DNA of 63,883 nt, filler included, from Parasitella parasitica NRRL 2501 (lineage: Eukaryota; Fungi; Mucoromycota): NCBI GenBank assembly GCA_025201805.1. It is 7 parts of 7 records of this genome, joined end to end, with 100 filler letters (N's around TTAATTAATTAA, not from the genome) between each part and the next. Parts side by side here need not be neighbours in the genome. Positions count along the whole stretch, not along the records: positions 44,791 to 53,368 come from MU619473.1; 6 more parts are not named here. The stretch is one strand, 5' to 3'. Both the position numbers and the translations under genes were made by a program. The notes under the pieces were generated by a model. It was given only the letters and a program-made list of their open reading frames with translations. It had not been told where the DNA came from and made no database searches. Of this stretch, positions 4,263 to 53,468 are shown one piece after another; position 1 is the stretch's first letter, and each line of letters opens with the position of its first letter.

Positions 4263-6146
4263 TTAACTGTGGTATATGGGCTCAAAACAAGACACAGTAG
4301 GGCGAACATGGGGCTTGTAGAGATCCCAGATGCTTTCACAATCGTGATCTTCCACTTTCAGAAGCGAATTCAACATTTGGTCCTATATATTTATAAACAA
4401 CATGTCAGTAATTTAGCTACGAACTTACTTTCAAGAAATCATTTCATATTTACCTTGAATTTATTGATGACTTCTAATGCAATATCCATATGTACATAAG
4501 TGTGATATGTAGTAGGCAAAGTGAAGGATTGTTCCTCATGATACATGTATACACCGTTTTCAAGATCCATTTGCATCTGCAGTAATATGACCATTGTACC
4601 TTGCACGAGAATACCAAATGTCACTGCTTCATACTCTTTTTTGGCACGGCAGAGGCGTAGATGCAATTGACGTTTCATCATTTCCAATACACGCATTTTG
4701 TCTTTGTCAAGTAGGGCTTGGGAAGCTCCCGGCTTCTTCACTTCTCCACAACCTATTTCCACAACCTCTTCTTGCTGCTGAAAATAGAAAATGATGTCAG
4801 GACGTAAACTCTCAATTTCAATATCATCTTGCTGTTTGAAGACCCAAGAAGTGTTGTCAAACTCAACTTGGACTTGATCGTGAGCAGAGAACAACGGACA
4901 CAAAAAGGTAGACACAGATAATGCAACTTGGCTTAGTTCCGATCCTTTGCATTTAACTCTTGGTTTACCATGCAGTAAATAAGTGGAGGTGATGATGTTA
5001 TCGAAAGCCATTTGCTTCAAGGTTGTGTATGGATGTGGTTGAATATACAGTGTCCGTCTTTGCATAGCTCGTTTAAAGGCGTGAATATTTTTGTAGATGT
5101 TCTCCGGCAAACCATTACTATCATTATCATCACCATCGCTCAACAAGAAAGGGCCATCAGTCTTAAAAATGGTAGAGGCATGCAAACGGGTTAGACAATC
5201 TGTAGGGAACAATTGGCTTTCATCACATTTTTCCTTTGCACTAGCTACCAAGGCAGCAAATTGAGAATTGCGAATGGGTAGAGGAGTATGGGAAAAATCT
5301 CCAAGCTCGCATATCTCAATTCTGCAAGTATAGCCAACTGGTGTATCCATTAGATCAGATGGAAAGAACGAAGATGGTGAAGAAGTGGTATTACTGTTGG
5401 TATCCTGTATGCCATGAAAGAAAAATTAGCAGAGAAGCTTCAACAAAATATGGCACTGTACTTACATGATCAGAAATTATTTCAGAAGATACAAAGTTTT
5501 TGTCTGTGGCAGATCTGCAATTTCTTTTTCCTCGCGTTAAGGTAGAGGGTTGCTCAGATGTTGGAATTGAAGGTTGTTCAGGTGTTTGTTCCCTGGAGCG
5601 TTTCTATGCATCAACATAAATGTATGTCAGATAAGCGTTGCAAACAATATGGAACCATTAATATTGGTTACCTGGCCGGATGAACCTTTATCCTGCGTTA
5701 TTATACTCTGTTTATTATCCTATGCGAAATCAATTACTACCACAATGTGAACGTCTGTCCTGGAATCTAACTCACTTGTACAATGTTCAATTGCTCGATA
5801 GTGTTGTCTGAAATGTAGTTATTGTAGATGTTTGATTGAGGACTGCCGTTGCTACTTTGAGATGTTTTTTGAATTAATCCAATCAGTTCTGCATCCTATT
5901 CGAAATAACTATTAGTAGCAGTTGTAACATCTCAAGTAACCGTAGTAGACTTACTTTGTACGATGTCTTTAAACGTCTAGCCGCTTGGTCTTGCTGTTTT
6001 TGGAGCATTTTAACATCGTTGATATATTCCTGCAAGATCGCACGCACTGAAGCTAACGAATCTTTAGGCCAGTTTTCATGTGTCATCTTGAAATAATTCT
6101 CAAAGCTTGCATCGTTTTGACTTTTAAAGAACTCTGAAGTGTTCAT
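4263..6146 (-). CDS. Multi-exon protein with a C-terminal PD-(D/E)XK (restriction-endonuclease-like) domain
   Basis: ORFs 5883-6146 and 4439-5350 joined by GT-AG introns; last exon DQMLNSLL...PIYHS*. Motif LRPDII...EIGCGEVKK followed by TFGILVQG. Confidence 0.6.
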
Positions 6147-6314
6147 TATTAAATAAAGACGTATTTAAAGAAGGGGGTTTTCAGCTTTTTTTTTTTCGAG
6201 TGTGAACACTTACCTTCGTTGACTCTACTCCGACTTCCAATGTTATACTGGCTTTTTTTAATATCATAGACTTACATCAACAACCACAACCGTTCTTCCC
6301 ATCATTAGTTCCCA

Positions 6315-7320
6315 TTGCTTTTTCCTGTTGCACACCAGCAGTTCGCAAGAAAACGACGAGTAAATATTTTTGATTTGATGTATAAATCTGTCGACGTGCT
6401 CCCAAGAAACTATGACAACGTAGTGATCAATCTGCCCACTAGTCCTACGCTCCCTCTATCAACCGTCATATATTCCAGCCATCAAAGTGGTGTCAAACGG
6501 CCCAAGAAAATCCATTCAATGACTGTTGCGGACAAGTACGTCCAACCCGCCATTTCCTACACTGGAAGAATCCCTCAGATCCTTCACTTACCGTGTGGAA
6601 CAAGGCACCTAGACAATTGATTCAGGGCATTTCCACTGGCTCCTACCGGCTACAACCTTTCTTTCTCCCTTTGTGTACTCCCTCTGCTTCTCCTCCTCCA
6701 CCACCCTCCAGTCCTTCATTGCGCCCATTTTTTGCTTGCCTCACAATTGACAATGATCTCGCAATGATTCCAATTGGATGTAGCTCCAAATCGTTTCAGC
6801 AGGCATGCTTTTCTGCTTCAGTTGTTCCAAAGCAGTTGGCTGCCATTCCCTCTTCTCGATAGTCCTTCTTCTGGTCTCTCTTTTGGACCATGATAAAAAT
6901 AAATGTCGTCTATCGGTTTATCAACTGTTGTATCCCACATCAAATTCCTGTTGCATCGCATTTTTCCCTCTGTCTACTTGTGCCCAATATGCGCGGTGTG
7001 CTCATTCCATCAACCACTTCCTCTTTGAATACCCGGCCAAGGCAGAGGTTTGGCAGGACGCCATCTTCGAGTTCCTCTGGCCCACGGTGACCATCGATGA
7101 TATCCGCCATTCCTTCCTCACTCTCGATTTCTCTAAAATTTGATATAGTCAACGGCCACGTGCCTCTTTCCAACACATAGTCATCAATGCTAACATTTAG
7201 AAGGCTCATTATCGTCTTATCTTCAACCAAACTCCCTTTGCTTCCGTCGCTGTGCTGAATAGTATCCGACTCGACATCCAAAAGATAATCGATGAAGACA
7301 TCATTCATGACAGCCTATAA
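6315..7320 (+). pseudogene. Degenerate L1-like LINE ORF2 C-terminal fragment (zf-RVT region)
   Basis: C..C..SINHFLFEYPAKAEVW resembles the LINE C-terminal CCHC zinc region; broken by stops and frameshifts. Confidence 0.6.
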
Positions 7321-44690: not shown

Positions 44691-45453
44691 NNNNNNNNNN
44701 NNNNNNNNNNNNNNNNNNNNNNNNNNNNNNNNNNTTAATTAATTAANNNNNNNNNNNNNNNNNNNNNNNNNNNNNNNNNNNNNNNNNNNNATCTGATTTG
44801 TTTTTTTTTGGCGCTCCCATACCGTTAGCAATTAGCAGAAAGTACGGTGTTGATGTGGAGGCTATTAATATCTCTAGAAGAATAATGGGTGATGGAGATC
44901 AAGATGAATAATAAGTAACGAAATAAAATTACTAGTCGCGGCAGTTGTACTCAAAGTCTACCAACTTCAACAAGGCAAAAAAAAAAAAAGACCAGGCCGC
45001 CCGCCAGGGCAAACTACACTTTATAAATTATTGCTTCTTAAACTCATATCCATGGTATAATATAATCCCGACCTTTTGCTTTTTGGTAGAATTCAATAAA
45101 ACAAATCATACAAAGCGTCTGTGAAGTAATATAGCTATCATAATGTTTGTATTTTAAATGCTGACGTCTTGTAACTATATATATTCTTGTATAGCAATTA
45201 TTCGTATATATCATGACATCAATAAAACTCTTTCCTTGCGTATTACTAGCTGACAGATTTTTTCCTCTAACAAAAAACAGATACACGACAGGGATATCCC
45301 CTCGTCGTTATTTTTCCTCTTGTTTTTTGGCAGGTTAACTACGTGTTTTATTAAACATCTGGCTGTTTTAATTACCAGAAGCCATTTCATAATAATAACT
45401 GATCTGAATTCATTGATATAGAATTTTTTTTGAGTATTTTCCTATCCAAGTGA

Positions 45454-45715
45454 TGATTTATCAGAAAAGTTTAATAGAAATTAATCAGGTAAAGATCCGC
45501 TTATTACATTCAAAAATGGAGTGTTTATATACTTTCTATAAAAACTGAGGAAAGTAATGTGAAGATAGAGGTTTTAGTGATGAGATCTGGGAGATAATAG
45601 GCTAGATTGTATCTATCCCAAATGTCATGTCATATTATTTTATTATGATCTGATGTTTTATTCTTCTGTATGAGTTTATATTATATTGACATCCGGTTTT
45701 AGATTTGATACATCA
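45454..45715 (-). mobile_element. Solo LTR, family B
   Basis: Reverse complement of 1491-1745; flanks AGTGA/ATTGG match only partly. Confidence 0.85.
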
Positions 45716-45969
45716 ATTGGTGTTGAATCATATTATTGCTGATATGTCGATAATTTTGCGGATATAAATATATTTAAGATTATATATTTGGGTCATCTTT
45801 AAAAAGTGAAACTGTATTTACACTTGTTTACTTGATATTTCAATAAGAACTAAATGAAAGAATCTTCCTTTACCAAGCGCATCAAAGATGTGGAACCATA
45901 GTGGATGTCAATGCTCTGCTGTTACATAACATAGATCAAAATGCTAGTCGAACTGAAAGTATGAATGTT

Positions 45970-46620
45970 CTTTACTCGCCTAAGCACCCACCTATAGCGC
46001 CTTCGAATATGGCTGCGGAAGGCGACTTGTTTTCGGGTTCCATTAAAAAACGGGTGGTTATTCCATGAGTTTCTATTTTCTCTTTACTAACACCTGAAAA
46101 CATCTACAAGAACGTGACTAAAGGACCGGCTATGCATGTGTACAGATCCAACCTGGTTACTCGGAGTCGGCTCCCTTGTAAAGCTAACCCTTGAAATAAT
46201 GTGAAGCAGTGTTTGTCCAACACAAACATCGGGTGAAAGGCTCTGCCCTACCATCCGAGTAACCTTATGCTCACATTTTTCGAACATTATAGGGTTTAGG
46301 GGAAGATCTACCGCTCGTGTTCTGTCTGCCAGCCGGAAAAAACTCGAGGGAAATGAAGGTAGGCTTTTCCCTGGAGACATATGGCTCGCAGATTGGAGCT
46401 GATGTTAGTAAATGCACTTAAGTAGGCGGGCAGCACTAGTACTAGTTAGGGTTTACTAAAAAGAACAATTCAACTTGTTCCACTCCTAACGTTAGATAGA
46501 TAGCGCGTTTGGTCCTCCATGTCGGTAAATGTGGGAAGTAATTACCCTTTGCAGCTGGTGTTTTGAGTTCTGGGGGCTGCAATCAGATGTGCACTCACCT
46601 TCTCGCGGTTGATTGTGTTA
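45970..46620 (+). ncRNA. Candidate large structured RNA with nested helices and two pseudoknots, identity unknown
   Basis: More than ten complementary segment pairs; G-U pairs consistently favour the + strand; higher GC than the flanks; no credible ORF. Confidence 0.55.
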
Positions 46621-46851
46621 GTATTATGGTACATGTACTATAAGAACTAAGAAGTGCATAGTTATGTAGTTTTATACTGTTGCTTTATATTAATAAAGAT
46701 TGTATTTTTTTTAACTGTAAAAACAAAATTGAAGTGAATAGCTCACCAAAGATAACCTTGAGACCATTTCTGAAATACAGTATAATATGATATATCAGGC
46801 ATACAATCAGACATATAATCTTCAGCGGATGTCACATAGCAAATAAATCAA

Positions 46852-46930
46852 ATAATTAAATACATTATATTCATCATGTTGAGACACTCAGATAATTAGA
46901 TACATTATATTCATCATATTGAGACACTCA
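46852..46930. repeat. 40-bp tandem repeat x2
   Basis: ataattaratacattatattcatcatrttgagacactca occurs twice. Confidence 0.9.
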
Positions 46931-47049
46931 ATACAACAGCTGTAGTATCAACTGCTTTCAATGTACTTCATTTGAGCAGCAATTTACTGTAAAATAAACT
47001 CATTCCGATAAAATGTGTAGTCTATAGGCATGTTTAACTAACAATTGCG

Positions 47050-49167
47050 TATCTTACGTTGTTTCCATGTGCTTTTTTTTTTTTTTTTTTTTAATCACCA
47101 ACTCTTTAACTGGCCAATATCCATTTCTTCCAGAGGTCTTTGACTGAGGATATTTCACGAGCCATTGTGTAAATAGAAACACCGCCAGCAGTGTACTGAA
47201 GATGGTCTGGCAGAGTTGCGGTTGGGATAGCACAAGGTGATAAACATGGGCTGGTGATTGGTACGTTGTTGCCGCTGACGATATCCAGAATGCGTTGCTG
47301 GAATAGCTGGGCTTCCTTGTGTGCAGCTTTTTGCTTCTCACTAATTTCAGTCATTCCAGCATTGATTAGCCTTTTGATTTCTTCAAGCTGCTGCAGAATC
47401 TCGAGGGCAACGCCACTGATGTTCAGAGAGTCCGGCTCTTTATCAGCATCTAAATGAGCATCCACTTTTCTGTAGGAAGAGAACATTTTAGATGCAGGAT
47501 CTCGGAAAGCAACTATCATAAAAACTTGCTTTTTAAAATCAGCAAACAGTTGCGTCTCAAAGATCTCGTGCCTCCAGATTGGATGGTCGGGTATCAGGTT
47601 CATCATAGCAGCCGCGTTGTCTTGAAGCATTTTATAAGCATTAGGAATTTTACTGCCGAGCCAGAGCTTTGTTTGACTGAATCGGTGGAGACCAGCTCAG
47701 ACCAGTAGTCAGCCATCGGGAAAACCAAGTCTCTCAACTCTTGGCTGGGCTCCTCAATAGCCCTTGGTATATGATAGGCGGCATCGTTGTCAAACCTGGC
47801 AATGGCTCTCATGAACTGGCAAGGTATTGTGTTTAGATATGACTTTGTCATGACATCAGTGCCCCACTTGCCCATTCTTTGGATTTGCGCCGCAGGAATA
47901 CCAAAGAGATCAGCCATTTGCGTGGCACAAATAGGAGGAGCGTGCGTAACCTTTCCTGCAATAAAGACACCAGCACGGTGAAAAGCCTCTCTCATGAACC
48001 TAGTTTGAGTGGCACTTGAGATTGGTGTTTCCCAGTGGCTACTGTACACTCTTCTTAGTAGTTGCGTTCGTCGCTAGAAGAGTCATATTCAACATCTTCA
48101 GTAGTAGCATCAATGTTGATAATTGTGAATTCAACCTATACAGTGCGTTGTAACGTTACCTTTTACAGTTGCTGACTGTAGCTTCGCGCCATGGGTTACC
48201 TTAATGTTGAACCAGTCTTTGCTGCTATCCATGTTTGGAAAGTCTTCTTTTTCGTGATGCCATCTCCAGAAAAACTGGAAACTGAGGGCCATGAAAGGAC
48301 AAATATCGACCATTTTATTCCGCATACAAGCGCCAGACTTGGTCTTGCCATCCTTGTTGCGCTTACCCTGATTGAAGATAAAGACAATAGAAGGGTATGT
48401 ACCCACAGCGTTTACCTTGTGAAGTTCCATATATTGTAGATCCGAGAACTCCAGGTTCTTTATGGATTCTCCGCGAAGCAGCAAGAAACGTTGCAGCAGA
48501 AATGAAGTTGCATTTGTAAACCGAAGCTTGTAGTTTTGCTGAGAATTATTGTGCATTCATCGAGCTATCAACGCAACTTTCATGTTGGTCGAGTAACCGT
48601 TCGATAGATAGTTAGCTGCGCGGTCCATATAATTGTCTCTATTTTCCTTTGATTGTCTTTGTCGAACCCACTTAAGAAACTGAGAAACTGTTTTCGTTCT
48701 GGGAGATTCATTGGTATTGCTGCCCAAAAGTCGTTGATAGTCCATGTTGACGATTGCAGAGATCTATACATTGCAAGTGCTGTGGGAAAGCTTTTTGTTT
48801 GTGGAAGAAATCGCATTCTCCAAGATCTCCGTATTCACTGCTGATTCTTTGTTTGATTCGTCGATATAGGTTTTTCCAGCTTTACAAAGTGTACGTTCTA
48901 CCACCTTTAATAGCATAAAACATCATTAGCTGCGTGTATACGCATATCATTCATATTTACCGATTCCAAAAGAAATGCAAGTAGCTTTCCACCCGTAACT
49001 TGAAAATGAGAGACAAGCGGATGAACAACGTAGACTTTTTTATAAAACAAAAGGAACTCTACCAGCTTATTGCAATAGGCTAAAGAGGTATTGATTCCAC
49101 GAGCTTTCTGGATTTCTCTGTATGCCAATTTGCTAATGCTAGCTTCATATTCAGCTATCATAGACTC
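47050..49167 (-). mobile_element. Decayed Crypton-type tyrosine-recombinase transposon (Ndc10-II-like YR plus GCR1_C domain)
   Basis: LLRGESI, QGKRN, CMRNK.VDICP..AL, KVTHA...MGKW...M..SYL..IP..FMR.IA.F, YTMAREISSVKDLWKKW; frameshifts and stops. Confidence 0.85.
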
Positions 49168-49578
49168 TGTTGGATCAAAAAAAAAGATAATGAAACCAAA
49201 TGTTAACGAGATACGAAACTTAACAATACTTTATTTAAGACCGAAATTGCATCTGCTATTTATACTTTTTACAGCTACATAAATTTATGGTGACTTAATT
49301 AGATTATTAATTGACAAGACTAACTCACAGTGACAATCTACTTGACAAGGCACGATATGAGGTTATACAGCAAGGGCTACACGTCTTTGATCTGACAGTG
49401 TTTTGACCTTCATTCTGGTGCTCAGATCTGTCTTACTTACAGGAATAACCTTCTTGATTTGAAACAGAGACTTTATTCTCCAATTTACACAAGCGTATCA
49501 CATCACACCATTGAACAATCTTCAATCTTCAATTGAAGTACATTGCCATGATCTTCTGTCTATAATTATGGCAGATCA
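49168..49578 (-). mobile_element. Solo LTR, family A, non-matching flanks
   Basis: Close copy of 855-1270; flanks GACTC and TTTTT. Confidence 0.9.
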
Positions 49579-52500
49579 TTTTTCATTTTTGATTACGCAT
49601 ATATATTTGCAAAAAACCCTCGGTATACGAGAACAACAAAGCGTGTTTATTTAGTATATATGAAGTGTATAAGAGCAAAGTTAACAAGAATAAACGCGAG
49701 AAAAAGATGGCAGCAAAAGAGGACACAACACAATAGCAGACGAAAGGCATACAAGATAAAGGCAGCATAAAAATGAAGGTGCATCATAAAGGTAGTGCAC
49801 ATTTTACAAGTTAATAATACTACCAGCATTTTTTGACATGTCCTGATCAAAACCATGGTAGTTACCAATTACATTAAAGTCAAGCTCATTTGACAATGAT
49901 TGCACCAGACCAACTTGCAAAGTGATATCATCAACTGCAATGACCCCATATTTGGGATCAATAATTGGATTTGCTCCAGCTGCGAATTGTTAACTGATTG
50001 GTTTGTTCATGCGAACCAAAGGAATGGATGAATCGTGCGCTGCTGCACGGTGCTGCTTCATCACTTTAACAAATGCCAAAAAGTACGTGTTGTTATTGTA
50101 TTCGTGTTCAAAAAAGAAAAGAACACTTTGTTGAGATCTGCAAGATCGAAATAAGAAAAGTATAATATAAAACGTTGAATTAACGAGATACGAAAACTTG
50201 AGATTACTTTATTGAAGATTCAACTTTGCATCTGCTATTTATACTTTTTGCAACAACATAAATTTTTGGTGACTTATTTAAAATACTAGTCGATAGTAAT
50301 CGATAAGAATAATTTGCAAGCAACATCATATCCTTAACAGGGTACGATATATTATTATACTACAAGGTTATTGATCTTTGATCTGACAGTACCTTATTGT
50401 TTGTCAATCATACAGATCTGTGTTACAGATAACCTTCCTGATTTGAAACAAAGACTTTATTCTCCTGTTTCGACCAGTATAACAACACATCATTGGACAA
50501 TCTCCAATCTTTAATTGAAGTACACTATCATGATCTCCTAACCTACATTATGGCAGATCACACTTCCAACAAATCAACATGAAACTATCTGATTGACGAA
50601 ATTTATGTGATTGCTGTTGAACATCACATGGCGGTTGCCTCGACGATATTCATGGATTTTATCTCTGTATCCTTCTGATACAATAAGAGACGATCTCAGC
50701 AAAACGCGATGAGCAGTGGTGAAATTCAGGCTGATTGGTGGATAGGCAGGCTCTAATCGATTCACAGAATAAATTCGACAGTAGAATTTGGTGATTGCTC
50801 TTTTGATTTTTGGTAATGGCACATTTTGCAGGCTATCTTCAAGACTTCTTCCATCAGCGACGCCAAATGGCGCAAATGGTTCCCACAACTGAGTGCTTGT
50901 TACAGATTGCGGGTGATCCCTATACGAATTATCCGAATATGGTCTTGGTCTTACCCCTTGCAAGAATTCATTCGCATCAAAAGTTCTTTTCAGATGGTTT
51001 CGAATAACCACGACTTCGATCAAATTGGACGCTTGCGCATTGGTACGTACTTTGGCAGTTATAAGATCTCCAAACTTGCCAATACATCTGAATTAATTGT
51101 GTTTTAGTAGAGTCAACTAATGCATGCTCTAGTATGTTTTGTGGCTCACCTCTCCAAGCTTCTTGATAAATACGCTGTGATAGGACCAATTTTACGAATC
51201 ATCCAGGTTACATAGATAATGCTGGACTGGTCGGAAAACAGAAACAAATAGTTGCTTGGCAGCTATTTTTCTTTTGCAATAGTCGTGGAAGGATTGTAAA
51301 CATTCATCAGTTTCGTTCAGACTTCGCTCCGTAAACTCCCATTGCAACGAGAGGCAGATACCTCTGGTCAATTTCATGATGGCTTTTGCTGCTTGTGGAT
51401 CACTTAATTTAGGGAGAAAGAGAGTAGGGATTATATACTGCAAACGAAGTAAATAAGTTTCTAACTGGATTCTTTTTTTTAAATATGAAAAACATACCAA
51501 TGCAATGTCGAGGTAATCAACTGCTCGTGTACCTCTCACTTTTTGTATGACATCTTGAAATGCTCCATGGAATGCCACAGGAATAAACTGCCTTGGTTTT
51601 TCAATCTGTTGCCCAATTTCTTTCAGCTTCAGCTTTGGAATGTAGAAAGGATAGCTTTCAACTTCGAAATCACCACTTTCGTATTTGTGAAAAAACTTTG
51701 TGTTGCTTGTTGAAAGGTCTACCGTCAGCATTTGCAGCAATTGAGAAGAGACACCTCTACAAAGTAAATGCGTCTCTTCAAGAGAGAACATCTGTGGTCC
51801 AGAGAAAGTAGAGAATTGAGTAAATAAGCTCACGCCGTTATATTCAAGGCTCGAGCTTGCTTCACTATAATCCTCGAGGGTTCTCATTGATGCATTTGAG
51901 TCTGGAAATTAAAGGCCATGGGGCCTCTTATCTGGGTGGACTCCTCGACTGTAACATATTCTACAGCCGTATTCCTAAGAATGGTATGCACAACGACTCC
52001 AATCAAAAACAGCTAAAGGTATCAAAAGTGAAGGAATTAATACAGTAACCTGCAGATACAGTTGAGCGTTGGTTCTGACTAGTATTACCTGGAATATCCC
52101 CACCAGCAATTAGACAATGTGCGCGCAATCTAATCTCCATGTTATCCGGTGTTTTCACAGCCATTGGATTTCAGCCAAGATTACAGATAGGTAAGAGGAA
52201 AAAGAAGCAGGTTCTTCTTGCCTGGAAGAATGTAAAGCTGAATAGAATATTCATTTTTAAAGCGATTGTTGGTATTGTAATTCAAAATCAGAACATGAAT
52301 CATGCTGAAAAGTCTTGAGTCACGCTTATCAATAACAAATCCATCCTTTTGAATACATAGGCCAATATCGTACTCGTTTGTGAAATGCTTAGCTCTAAGA
52401 TTTTGATAATCTTGGCCATCAAACACATCTCGAATGATGACTCGATCTAATGGATCTTCCGGTTGCTCGTCTTCTTCATGTTCAGCACCAAAATTATGTC

Positions 52501-53366
52501 TATATCTCAGTTCTTCTCGGGTCACAGGATTTGCTATCAAACGAGAAAGGACGTCGCCAATAGACATAATTTTCATCGTCGAAAATGGCTTATTGGAATT
52601 TCGGCTGTCAAAGCGATCATGGGAGCAATGGCGGCATTCAGTATCATCGTCCTCCAAATTGTAGAGTTTACAGCCATTTTCACATACATCGTATGAATGA
52701 CCGCTCAAAGTGGACTGCTGCTGCATCATACGCTCAACCTGAGGACCATGAAGGACCTGAGGGTCGCTTTCTAATAAACGAAATTGCTGTTGGTAAGTAT
52801 ACTGCATATATTTACATCCTGTGGTTTTTCTTAACCATACCTCTTGCTAATTTGTCATTGTCCCGGATTGTAGTATTCATCAGTCTTACTATTTTTCGGT
52901 AAGCATCTCTTGGAATACTGAAATATTTGATCTAATCATACAGCTCAATGGAGATTAATTCTGATGTGGAATACCTGTTTGGACCAATATTCTCAATTGA
53001 TCTGCAATCATACACACAAGCTAAATCATCAGAACCATCTTCAATGACACCACTTGTTTTGTATTTTGTATCAACCACCATGGCCAACTTGAGTGATAAA
53101 ATCCTAACTACTGGTGATGCTTTAGCAACTAGGTGTCCAAAATAAGCACCAGTGATTAGATTTTACACACAAAATGTAGAACTCAATCACTCAAACATCG
53201 TAAGCTTCAATTAGAACTCCCTTTTAGTTTTCGCGAACCATTTTCCATTGACGTTATGCTCAAAAAATTGCGATCAGACGTTTATTCATCACTAAACTTT
53301 AAAAACAATCACTAAAAATAGAATAAGTGATTGATTCATCACCAAGCATTTAAGAATATCACTGTG
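49579..53366 (-). mobile_element. Decayed CACTA/CMC-superfamily DNA transposon (Tnp2/transposase_21-like)
   Basis: YDVCENGCKLY...C.HC...RF, IRDVFDG..Y, GDIP, LEETHLL, HYL. Terminus CACAGTG at 53366 with subterminal ATCACTAA-type repeats. Confidence 0.8.
50129..50560 (-). mobile_element. Solo LTR, diverged family A, 5-bp TSD CACTT, inserted in the transposase
   Basis: CACTT at 50124-50128 and 50561-50565; removing the LTR restores FVGSVLFFFEH. Confidence 0.9.
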
Positions 53367-53468
53367 AANNNNNNNNNNNNNNNNNNNNNNNNNNNNNNNN
53401 NNNNNNNNNNNNTTAATTAATTAANNNNNNNNNNNNNNNNNNNNNNNNNNNNNNNNNNNNNNNNNNNN

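Follow-up and report, generated by a model that had tools for sequence, protein, structure and literature searches.

A probable non-coding transcription unit, dispersed and multi-copy, with a highly conserved core in Parasitella parasitica

To our knowledge, almost no non-coding RNAs have been characterised in early-diverging fungi. The described systems closest to the locus analysed here are the dispersed U1/U2 snRNA and 5S gene families, the CORE-SINE and V-SINE retroposons, which carry a conserved central domain, and telomerase RNA. We examined positions 45970-46620 of a window of 63,883 nucleotides (the whole stretch of DNA that was analysed) from the Parasitella parasitica assembly GCA_025201805.1. 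Our main reading, to which we give a probability of about 0.6, is that this segment is the highly conserved core of a ~0.9-kb dispersed multi-copy non-protein-coding transcription unit. With the snRNA and 5S families the unit shares scattered copies that sit in flanks of their own, a transcribed part that is near-identical where the flanks diverge, an apparently abundant RNA and a conversion-like homogenisation of two of its copies (L002 and L003, below). It differs from them in matching no snRNA, snoRNA, SRP, RNase P or RNase MRP model, in being ~550 nt long, in having no recognisable promoter type and in having been found in Parasitella only. CORE-SINE and V-SINE retroposons resemble it as dispersed, transcribed, lineage-specific families with a conserved middle and variable ends, but the unit has no tRNA-, 5S- or 7SL-like head, no 3' poly(A) or simple-repeat tail in the sense orientation, no target-site duplications (TSDs) and no LINE partner.

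The unit spans ~45840-46715 of the window (~0.9-1.0 kb) and is present in at least four copies, each in an unrelated gene neighbourhood; in an earlier reading, made from the window sequence alone, one hypothesis (a retroelement module) had predicted many copies. The three further loci, in the same assembly, were reached through the contigs of proteins matching ORF97, a reading frame discussed below. The first (L001) adjoins genes for a UCH peptidase and an Orc1/Cdc6-like protein, the second (L002) lies between a kinesin gene and a histone deacetylase (HDAC) gene, and the third (L003) adjoins a WD40 gene on the same contig as L002, 115 kb from it. By blastn, homology between the window and the other copies is limited to ~45714/45838 through 46708/46850; the window and L002 have a further 183 bp of homology downstream (46902-47084), which ends in a T-run. 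L002 and L003 show 98% identity over just 945 bp, which is the unit alone, and L001 and L003 have ~1 kb of additional upstream sequence in common. Extents that vary in this way from pair to pair look like the outcome of segmental duplication and gene conversion rather than of a transposon with fixed ends, and we found no TSDs, terminal repeats or sharp boundaries common to the four copies that would define how the unit moves. Within the A+T-rich piece 44791-53368, it coincides with an island of ~45% G+C at ~45900-46650, flanked by DNA of 27-30% G+C. L003 also contains a 551-nt inverted repeat (6035-6585 and 6664-7214 of that locus; 96% identity, 78-nt spacer), which lies ~340 bp upstream of the unit and has one arm in common with L001.

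Aligning the window copy with L001, L002 and L003 divided the unit into parts that differ in conservation. The core, at ~46095-46640 (~550 nt), is 98-99% identical between copies, with 0-3 differences per 60 nt for any pair. In contrast, the part of the unit upstream of it (45840-46060) and the tail beyond 46610 show 5-25 differences per 60 nt, with indels, so that the unit's own upstream ~250 bp and its 3' tail are diverged by 8-20% between copies. The upstream part, common to all four copies at this 8-20% divergence, occupies 45838-46094 and is a possible promoter or leader; the three other copies have a (CTTTTT)n microsatellite at ~46083, exactly at the start of the core. Most of the RNA helices proposed earlier for this DNA fall inside the core (46095-46640), which has no Rfam match and whose ORFs have no Pfam match. 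Its most uniform and most abundant part is 46138-46329, covered in sequencing run X7 by a single contig with one mismatch and a depth of 1325. The less conserved tail (46641-46715) carries AATAAA at 46692-46697 and a T8 run at 46705-46712, and similarity to L001 is lost just past these two elements. Homology extends through 46716-47092, in L003 to ~46755 and beyond that only in L002. The uniformity of the core may reflect purifying selection, gene conversion or both; alternatively, four near-identical copies may have spread recently.

Several small features were seen in or beside the window copy. Just downstream of the unit lies a 40-bp tandem duplication with 93% identity (46848-46927). A T20 run at 47073-47092, 13 nt from the stop codon of an opposite-strand NDC10_II ORF, marks where homology with L002 stops; the corresponding run in L002 is T13. 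Inside the core, positions 46345-46346 of the window read C,G and form a CTCGAG site, whereas L001-L003 and all contigs of four sequencing runs read A,C; the window's C,G may be due to an assembly error or to a difference between strains.

We used contigs from these runs, whose depth is a rough measure and neither a true copy number nor an expression level, to gauge the size and activity of the family. A contig specific to the upstream part of the window copy (45886-46118, no mismatches) has single-copy depth in the DNA runs (X6, 30; X2, 22; X1, 158). Because the summed depth over the core, from contigs 85-100% identical, is 7-16 times that of this single-copy contig in the three DNA runs, the data suggest a family of roughly 5-15 related copies, some of them with whole segments deleted: in variant contigs the segments 46193-46288 and 46330-46398 are missing, as is ~46417-46490 in run X7.

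Run X7, whose label as RNA is only a guess, behaves differently. Its contigs reach a depth of 557-1601 over the core, compared with 0-12 over 46989-49029, a stretch that spans the neighbouring NDC10_II gene, which makes the core ~100 times deeper than neighbouring sequence; contigs next to 46138-46329 have depths of 12-26. In the DNA runs a repeat at 49187-49500 exceeds the core in depth ~100-fold, but in X7 it is 3-8 times shallower, and this inversion indicates that X7 is not plain DNA. No X7 contig covers 45733-46137, and one contig runs into Illumina adapter ~7 nt past 46682, a junction that suggests a defined molecule end. X7 contigs contain no spliced joint in the unit. These observations lead us to infer that the unit yields an unspliced and abundant RNA, roughly 550 nt long (~46138-46690), which could come from either strand: the adapter orientation points to + if the library was made with dUTP, the JGI gene models lie on -, and neither is decisive. 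Since none of the four runs contains the window's allele at 46345-46, the evidence for expression applies to the family and not to this particular copy. The sequence-only reading of the region as an RNA is supported in so far as it is non-coding, strongly conserved and apparently abundantly transcribed, given the ~100-fold excess in X7 (again, an RNA run by guess) and the lack of a conserved ORF.

The annotation tells another story. ORF97 (46087-46380, - strand, 97 aa), the longest ORF in the island, is annotated in two of the P. parasitica copies as a hypothetical protein, and the unit could accordingly be a small - strand protein-coding gene for the annotated 91-92-aa hypothetical proteins. 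Besides the annotation of those two copies in GCA_025201805.1, the splice-like words GTGAGT and TACTAAC on the - strand speak for such a gene. However, a word-based search with ORF97 returned only two P. parasitica hypothetical proteins (96% and 85% identity), and phmmer against 1.8 billion representatives returned only Parasitella proteins and two translated satellite repeats; satellites aside, there is no homologue beyond Parasitella in 5.8 billion or 1.8 billion proteins. Between copies, 8 codon changes are nonsynonymous and 3 are synonymous, and L002/L003 carry a frameshift, a pattern in which ORF97 appears to evolve neutrally, like non-coding DNA. Conservation is as high outside ORF97 as within it, no ORF of the island has a Pfam domain, and spliced-gene readings on both strands were rejected when run X7 gave no spliced joint. 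We consider a protein-coding gene highly improbable.

Searches for known RNA genes agree with the earlier statement that the sequence matches no known RNA family. At gathering thresholds, Rfam gave no matches in the piece 44791-53368 or in L001-L003. When E values up to 10 were admitted, the sole match was to the HDV-like ribozyme family (RF02682), at 46579-46659 (cmscan); the likeness is confined to a weak match on a 7-bp stem, its 16.6 bits are far below the gathering score of 44, and at E = 3.2 it is at chance level and was rejected. ARAGORN found no tRNA in the unit, and promoter and terminator scans gave nothing useful. For the earlier suggestion of a new class of non-coding RNA, conservation and abundance count in favour, and nothing further supports it.

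A more specific claim had been that the segment folds, on the + strand, into five nested helices and two pseudoknots, a structured RNA of a new class. The pairings and local hairpins of that model are all present in the sequence. The nested set includes 45975-82/46423-30 (8 bp, one G-U), 46083-92/46403-12 (10 bp, perfect; TTTACTAACA/TGTTAGTAAA), 46109-17/46315-23 (9 bp, two G-U) and 46144-48/46305-09, together with a stem in which CTAACCCT at 46184-91 is complementary to AGGGTTTAG at 46291-99. The pseudoknots are a perfect 11-bp pairing of 46155-65 with 46254-64 (GGTTACTCGGA/TCCGAGTAACC) and 46126-31/46331-36, with an AGCCGG arm at 46331-36; farther downstream lies 46445-50/46485-90. To gauge what chance would produce, we made 300 dinucleotide-preserving shuffles. 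The segment has 3 perfect inverted 10-mers, against a mean of 0.29 in the shuffles, 3% of which reach 3. The longest perfect complement is 11, compared with a shuffle mean of 8.7, and 7% of the shuffles reach this length (~1% inside the conserved core). Long perfect complements are therefore only modestly enriched (p ~0.01-0.07).

Folding energies are likewise close to those of shuffled controls. Minimum free energy (MFE) z values are -1.27 (+) and -2.68 (-) for 45970-46620, -2.0 (+) and -1.5 (-) for 46109-46403, +0.9 (+) and -2.3 (-) for 46404-46700, and -1.2 (+) and -0.75 (-) for 46138-46329. This signal is weak and does not favour the + strand, and the values for the whole segment do not support an RNA fold beyond chance. 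The 11-bp pairing is absent from both the + strand MFE structure and the alifold consensus, and is used in the - strand MFE structure.

Comparison of the four copies bears directly on the model. An alifold covariation check found no compensatory changes in either orientation (0 of 187 pairs on + and 0 of 171 on -), although its power is low with copies that are 98-99% identical. The two outermost helices are not maintained. In 46083-92/46403-12, one or two pairs are lost in the three other copies, so that the perfect form is specific to the window; TTTACTAACA becomes TTTACCAACA or TTTACC-ACG there and the partner arm is invariant. The two arms pair the branch-point consensus TACTAAC with its own reverse complement GTTAGTA, a 5' splice-site-like word. 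The helix 45975-82/46423-30 loses one to three pairs in the other copies, and the hairpins 46343-76 and 46551-80 have mismatches in them. All other helices apart from two are invariant across the four copies and hence uninformative. Of those two, the 11-bp pairing has two single substitutions in other copies that read as G-U on + and would be A-C on -, and 46198-208/46268-77 has one change that stays G-U on + and one that breaks the pair on + and would be G-U on -. G-U wobbles within the window copy had been taken as a sign of selection on a + strand RNA; at 3:1 in favour of +, the informative substitutions are not significant. The hairpin at 45998-46024 has a perfect 7-bp stem in the window only, the other three copies having A.A mismatches at two positions, and the fact that four substitutions perfect this hairpin suggests templated mutation rather than RNA selection.

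Expressed paralogues provide a further comparison. The 46193-46288 deletion takes out the 3' arm of the 11-bp pairing, the 46330-46398 deletion removes the AGCCGG pseudoknot arm, and the ~46417-46490 deletion removes the 46445-90 domain; as arms are missing in variants that are expressed, those elements are dispensable for expression. None of the data on the unit requires the nested-helix and pseudoknot model, five helices and two pseudoknots that are present as words but show no compensatory change and lose two outer helices and two hairpins in the copies. We regard a new class of + strand RNA folded roughly in this way as unlikely. In its favour are the complementary segments themselves, with their mild enrichment of long perfect ones, the three of four informative substitutions that keep pairing as G-U on +, an extremely conserved and abundant core, and the 46193-46288 deletion, which would leave the CTAACCCT/AGGGTTTAG stem closed, presumably, by a short loop. 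These points are outweighed by z values no better on + than on -, by the absence of compensatory changes among the four copies, by the helices and hairpins that break in the other copies, by expressed paralogues without 46330-46398 or ~46417-46490 and a 46193-46288 variant without the 3' arm of the 11-bp pairing, and by the fact that TTTACTAACA/TGTTAGTAAA sets a branch-point word against its own reverse complement in the window copy only.

The core is also enriched in telomere-like words, which raises the question of a telomerase RNA. Mucor telomeres are reported to consist of TTAGGG repeats (PMC11258239), and no Mucorales telomerase RNA is described in the literature searched. On the + strand, CTAACCCT (CUAACCCU, 46184-46191) is an 8-nt match to a TTAGGG-repeat template and is invariant in all four copies. 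On the - strand, 46445-46453 carries a 9-nt telomere-repeat match, AACCCTAAC (AACCCUAAC, read from 46453 to 46445), which is GTTAGGGTT on +. Further such words are TAGGGTTTAGGGG (46290-46302), GTTAGGGTTT and CCTAAC (46485-90). By our own arithmetic, a template match of 8-9 nt would arise by chance with a probability of a few percent per strand.

On this basis the unit could comprise one or more telomerase RNA genes, with CUAACCCU (+) or AACCCUAAC (-) as the template. It resembles the telomerase RNAs of fungi and vertebrates in being non-coding, several hundred nucleotides long and equipped with 8-9-nt matches to a TTAGGG template; the invariance of template-length matches in four copies, the TTAGGG repeats reported for Mucor, the lack of a Mucorales telomerase RNA in the literature searched and an abundant, non-coding RNA without a family all fit. 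It differs in being multi-copy, with at least four dispersed copies and probably 5-15, and non-syntenic, being absent from the syntenic sites tested. The template matches have the few-percent chance per strand given above, the + strand candidate is paired in predicted folds, and the - strand motif lies in a region that expressed paralogues delete. Rfam telomerase models gave no match at E up to 10, a weak negative as these models are clade-specific, and the four near-identical copies, with no compensatory change among them, gave no demonstrable pseudoknot with a triple helix or three-way junction of the CR4/5 type. The sequence-only reading had offered telomerase RNA as a hypothesis that a single-copy, syntenic gene would support; the motif fits TTAGGG, but copy number and lack of synteny count against it by that standard, and we judge it very unlikely. 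Somewhat more probable, though still doubtful, is a broader idea: that the family, with ~ten gene copies, makes an abundant ~550-nt RNA of an undescribed class which may be linked to telomere biology, for instance as an amplified telomerase RNA or as the RNA of another RNP, with words that resemble telomere-repeat template and anti-template.

Dispersal in repeat-rich DNA could also mean that the unit is a mobile element, non-autonomous, or that it belongs to a retroelement as one of its modules; the core would then be required for it to be transcribed or for a mobilising enzyme to recognise it. The order of Sel1/NAT, Orc1/Cdc6 and UCH genes around L001 is kept in Mucor circinelloides, M. hiemalis and Thamnidium elegans, and neither nhmmer (--max) nor blastn found the unit at the corresponding site in these three species. 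The copy at L001 is therefore lineage-specific and has arrived in DNA rich in repeats. The unit's absence from the UCH-Cdc6 site of the three species, like the multi-copy, dispersed distribution, counts in favour of such an element; a family whose central domain is conserved and whose ends vary also recalls SINEs of the CORE type. The L002 neighbourhood is less informative. In the other P. parasitica assembly, the kinesin neighbourhood (L007) stays collinear until 213 bp short of the extended homology that contains the unit; from there the contig passes into an insertion that bears an integrase, and it breaks off without reaching the relevant position. The kinesin region of three other Mucorales gave no homologue, the sequences being too short or not collinear. 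Where they can be aligned, L002 1-4150 and L007 3843-8000 (GCA_025201805.1 and GCA_000938895.1) are collinear with only 81% identity over 4.2 kb of genes and spacers; on this comparison, the two assemblies labelled Parasitella parasitica represent strongly diverged lineages. Scans of metagenomes for patterns of core motifs gave no matches.

The structure of the copies argues against a mobile element. At all four loci, ORFs for RT, APE or transposase are missing from the flanks, and neither ARAGORN nor Rfam detected a tRNA-like head. There is no sense-strand poly(A) tail, TSD or terminal repeat (the end runs are poly(T) on +, that is, poly(A) at the 5' end in the - sense), and the extent of homology varies by copy. 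Homologous flanks are far more diverged than the core, a difference that a single burst of insertion leaves unexplained. Earlier, the spacer or IRES between ORF1 and ORF2 of an L1-like element had been put forward; its expectation of many copies was right, but no RT, APE or other retroelement ORF lies beside any of the four loci. The likeness to such a spacer is that of a multi-copy non-coding sequence in a mucoralean genome, from which the unit departs in having no ORF1, APE or RT ORFs on either side at the four loci and, in the window, an opposite-strand NDC10_II (tyrosine-recombinase-like) gene as its neighbour, which the other copies do not have. A mobile element or retroelement module thus seems to us unlikely, on a par with the + strand fold.

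The surroundings of the window copy contain repeats and remnants of their own. NDC10_II is a tyrosine-recombinase-like domain, as found in Crypton-type elements. It is encoded at 47106-48556 (-) by three ORF pieces in different frames, and the gene looks broken; the region has ~3-8 times single-copy depth in the DNA runs, and the RNA-like run contains an 87%-identical paralogue. Short repeats of very high copy number lie at 45419-45732 (summed depth roughly 100 times single copy) and at 49187-49578 and 50180-50560 (roughly 1000 times), the latter two being 73-85% alike and ~980 bp apart. Contig joints link the 45.5-kb and 49.2-kb repeats, neither of which occurs in L001-L003 or the other loci compared.

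One likeness to a described fungal RNA was also followed up. Rhizopus microsporus 'lncRNA4' is conserved and essential, and a guide and homology arm for it have been published (bioRxiv 10.1101/2025.10.01.679568 supplement). About 17 nt of the window at 46207-46222 resemble this guide/homology arm. We set kinship aside: the resemblance is probably due to chance, as the flanks are unlike and both sequences are GU/AC palindromes.

Read most economically, the unit is a lineage-specific transcribed repeat or non-coding RNA gene family. In the model that we propose, each copy would carry its own promoter, in the conserved upstream part, and its own end signal, formed by AATAAA and the T-run, and would give rise to an abundant unspliced RNA of roughly 550 nt (~46138-46690). 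Duplication or ectopic recombination would have carried copies into intergenic DNA rich in repeats, and purifying selection, gene conversion or both would keep the transcribed core uniform. For the reading of single genomes, the case illustrates that long complementary words in one sequence are not evidence of RNA structure. For Parasitella, it would mean that a conserved, abundant, multi-copy non-coding transcript is mislabelled 'hypothetical protein' by current annotation.
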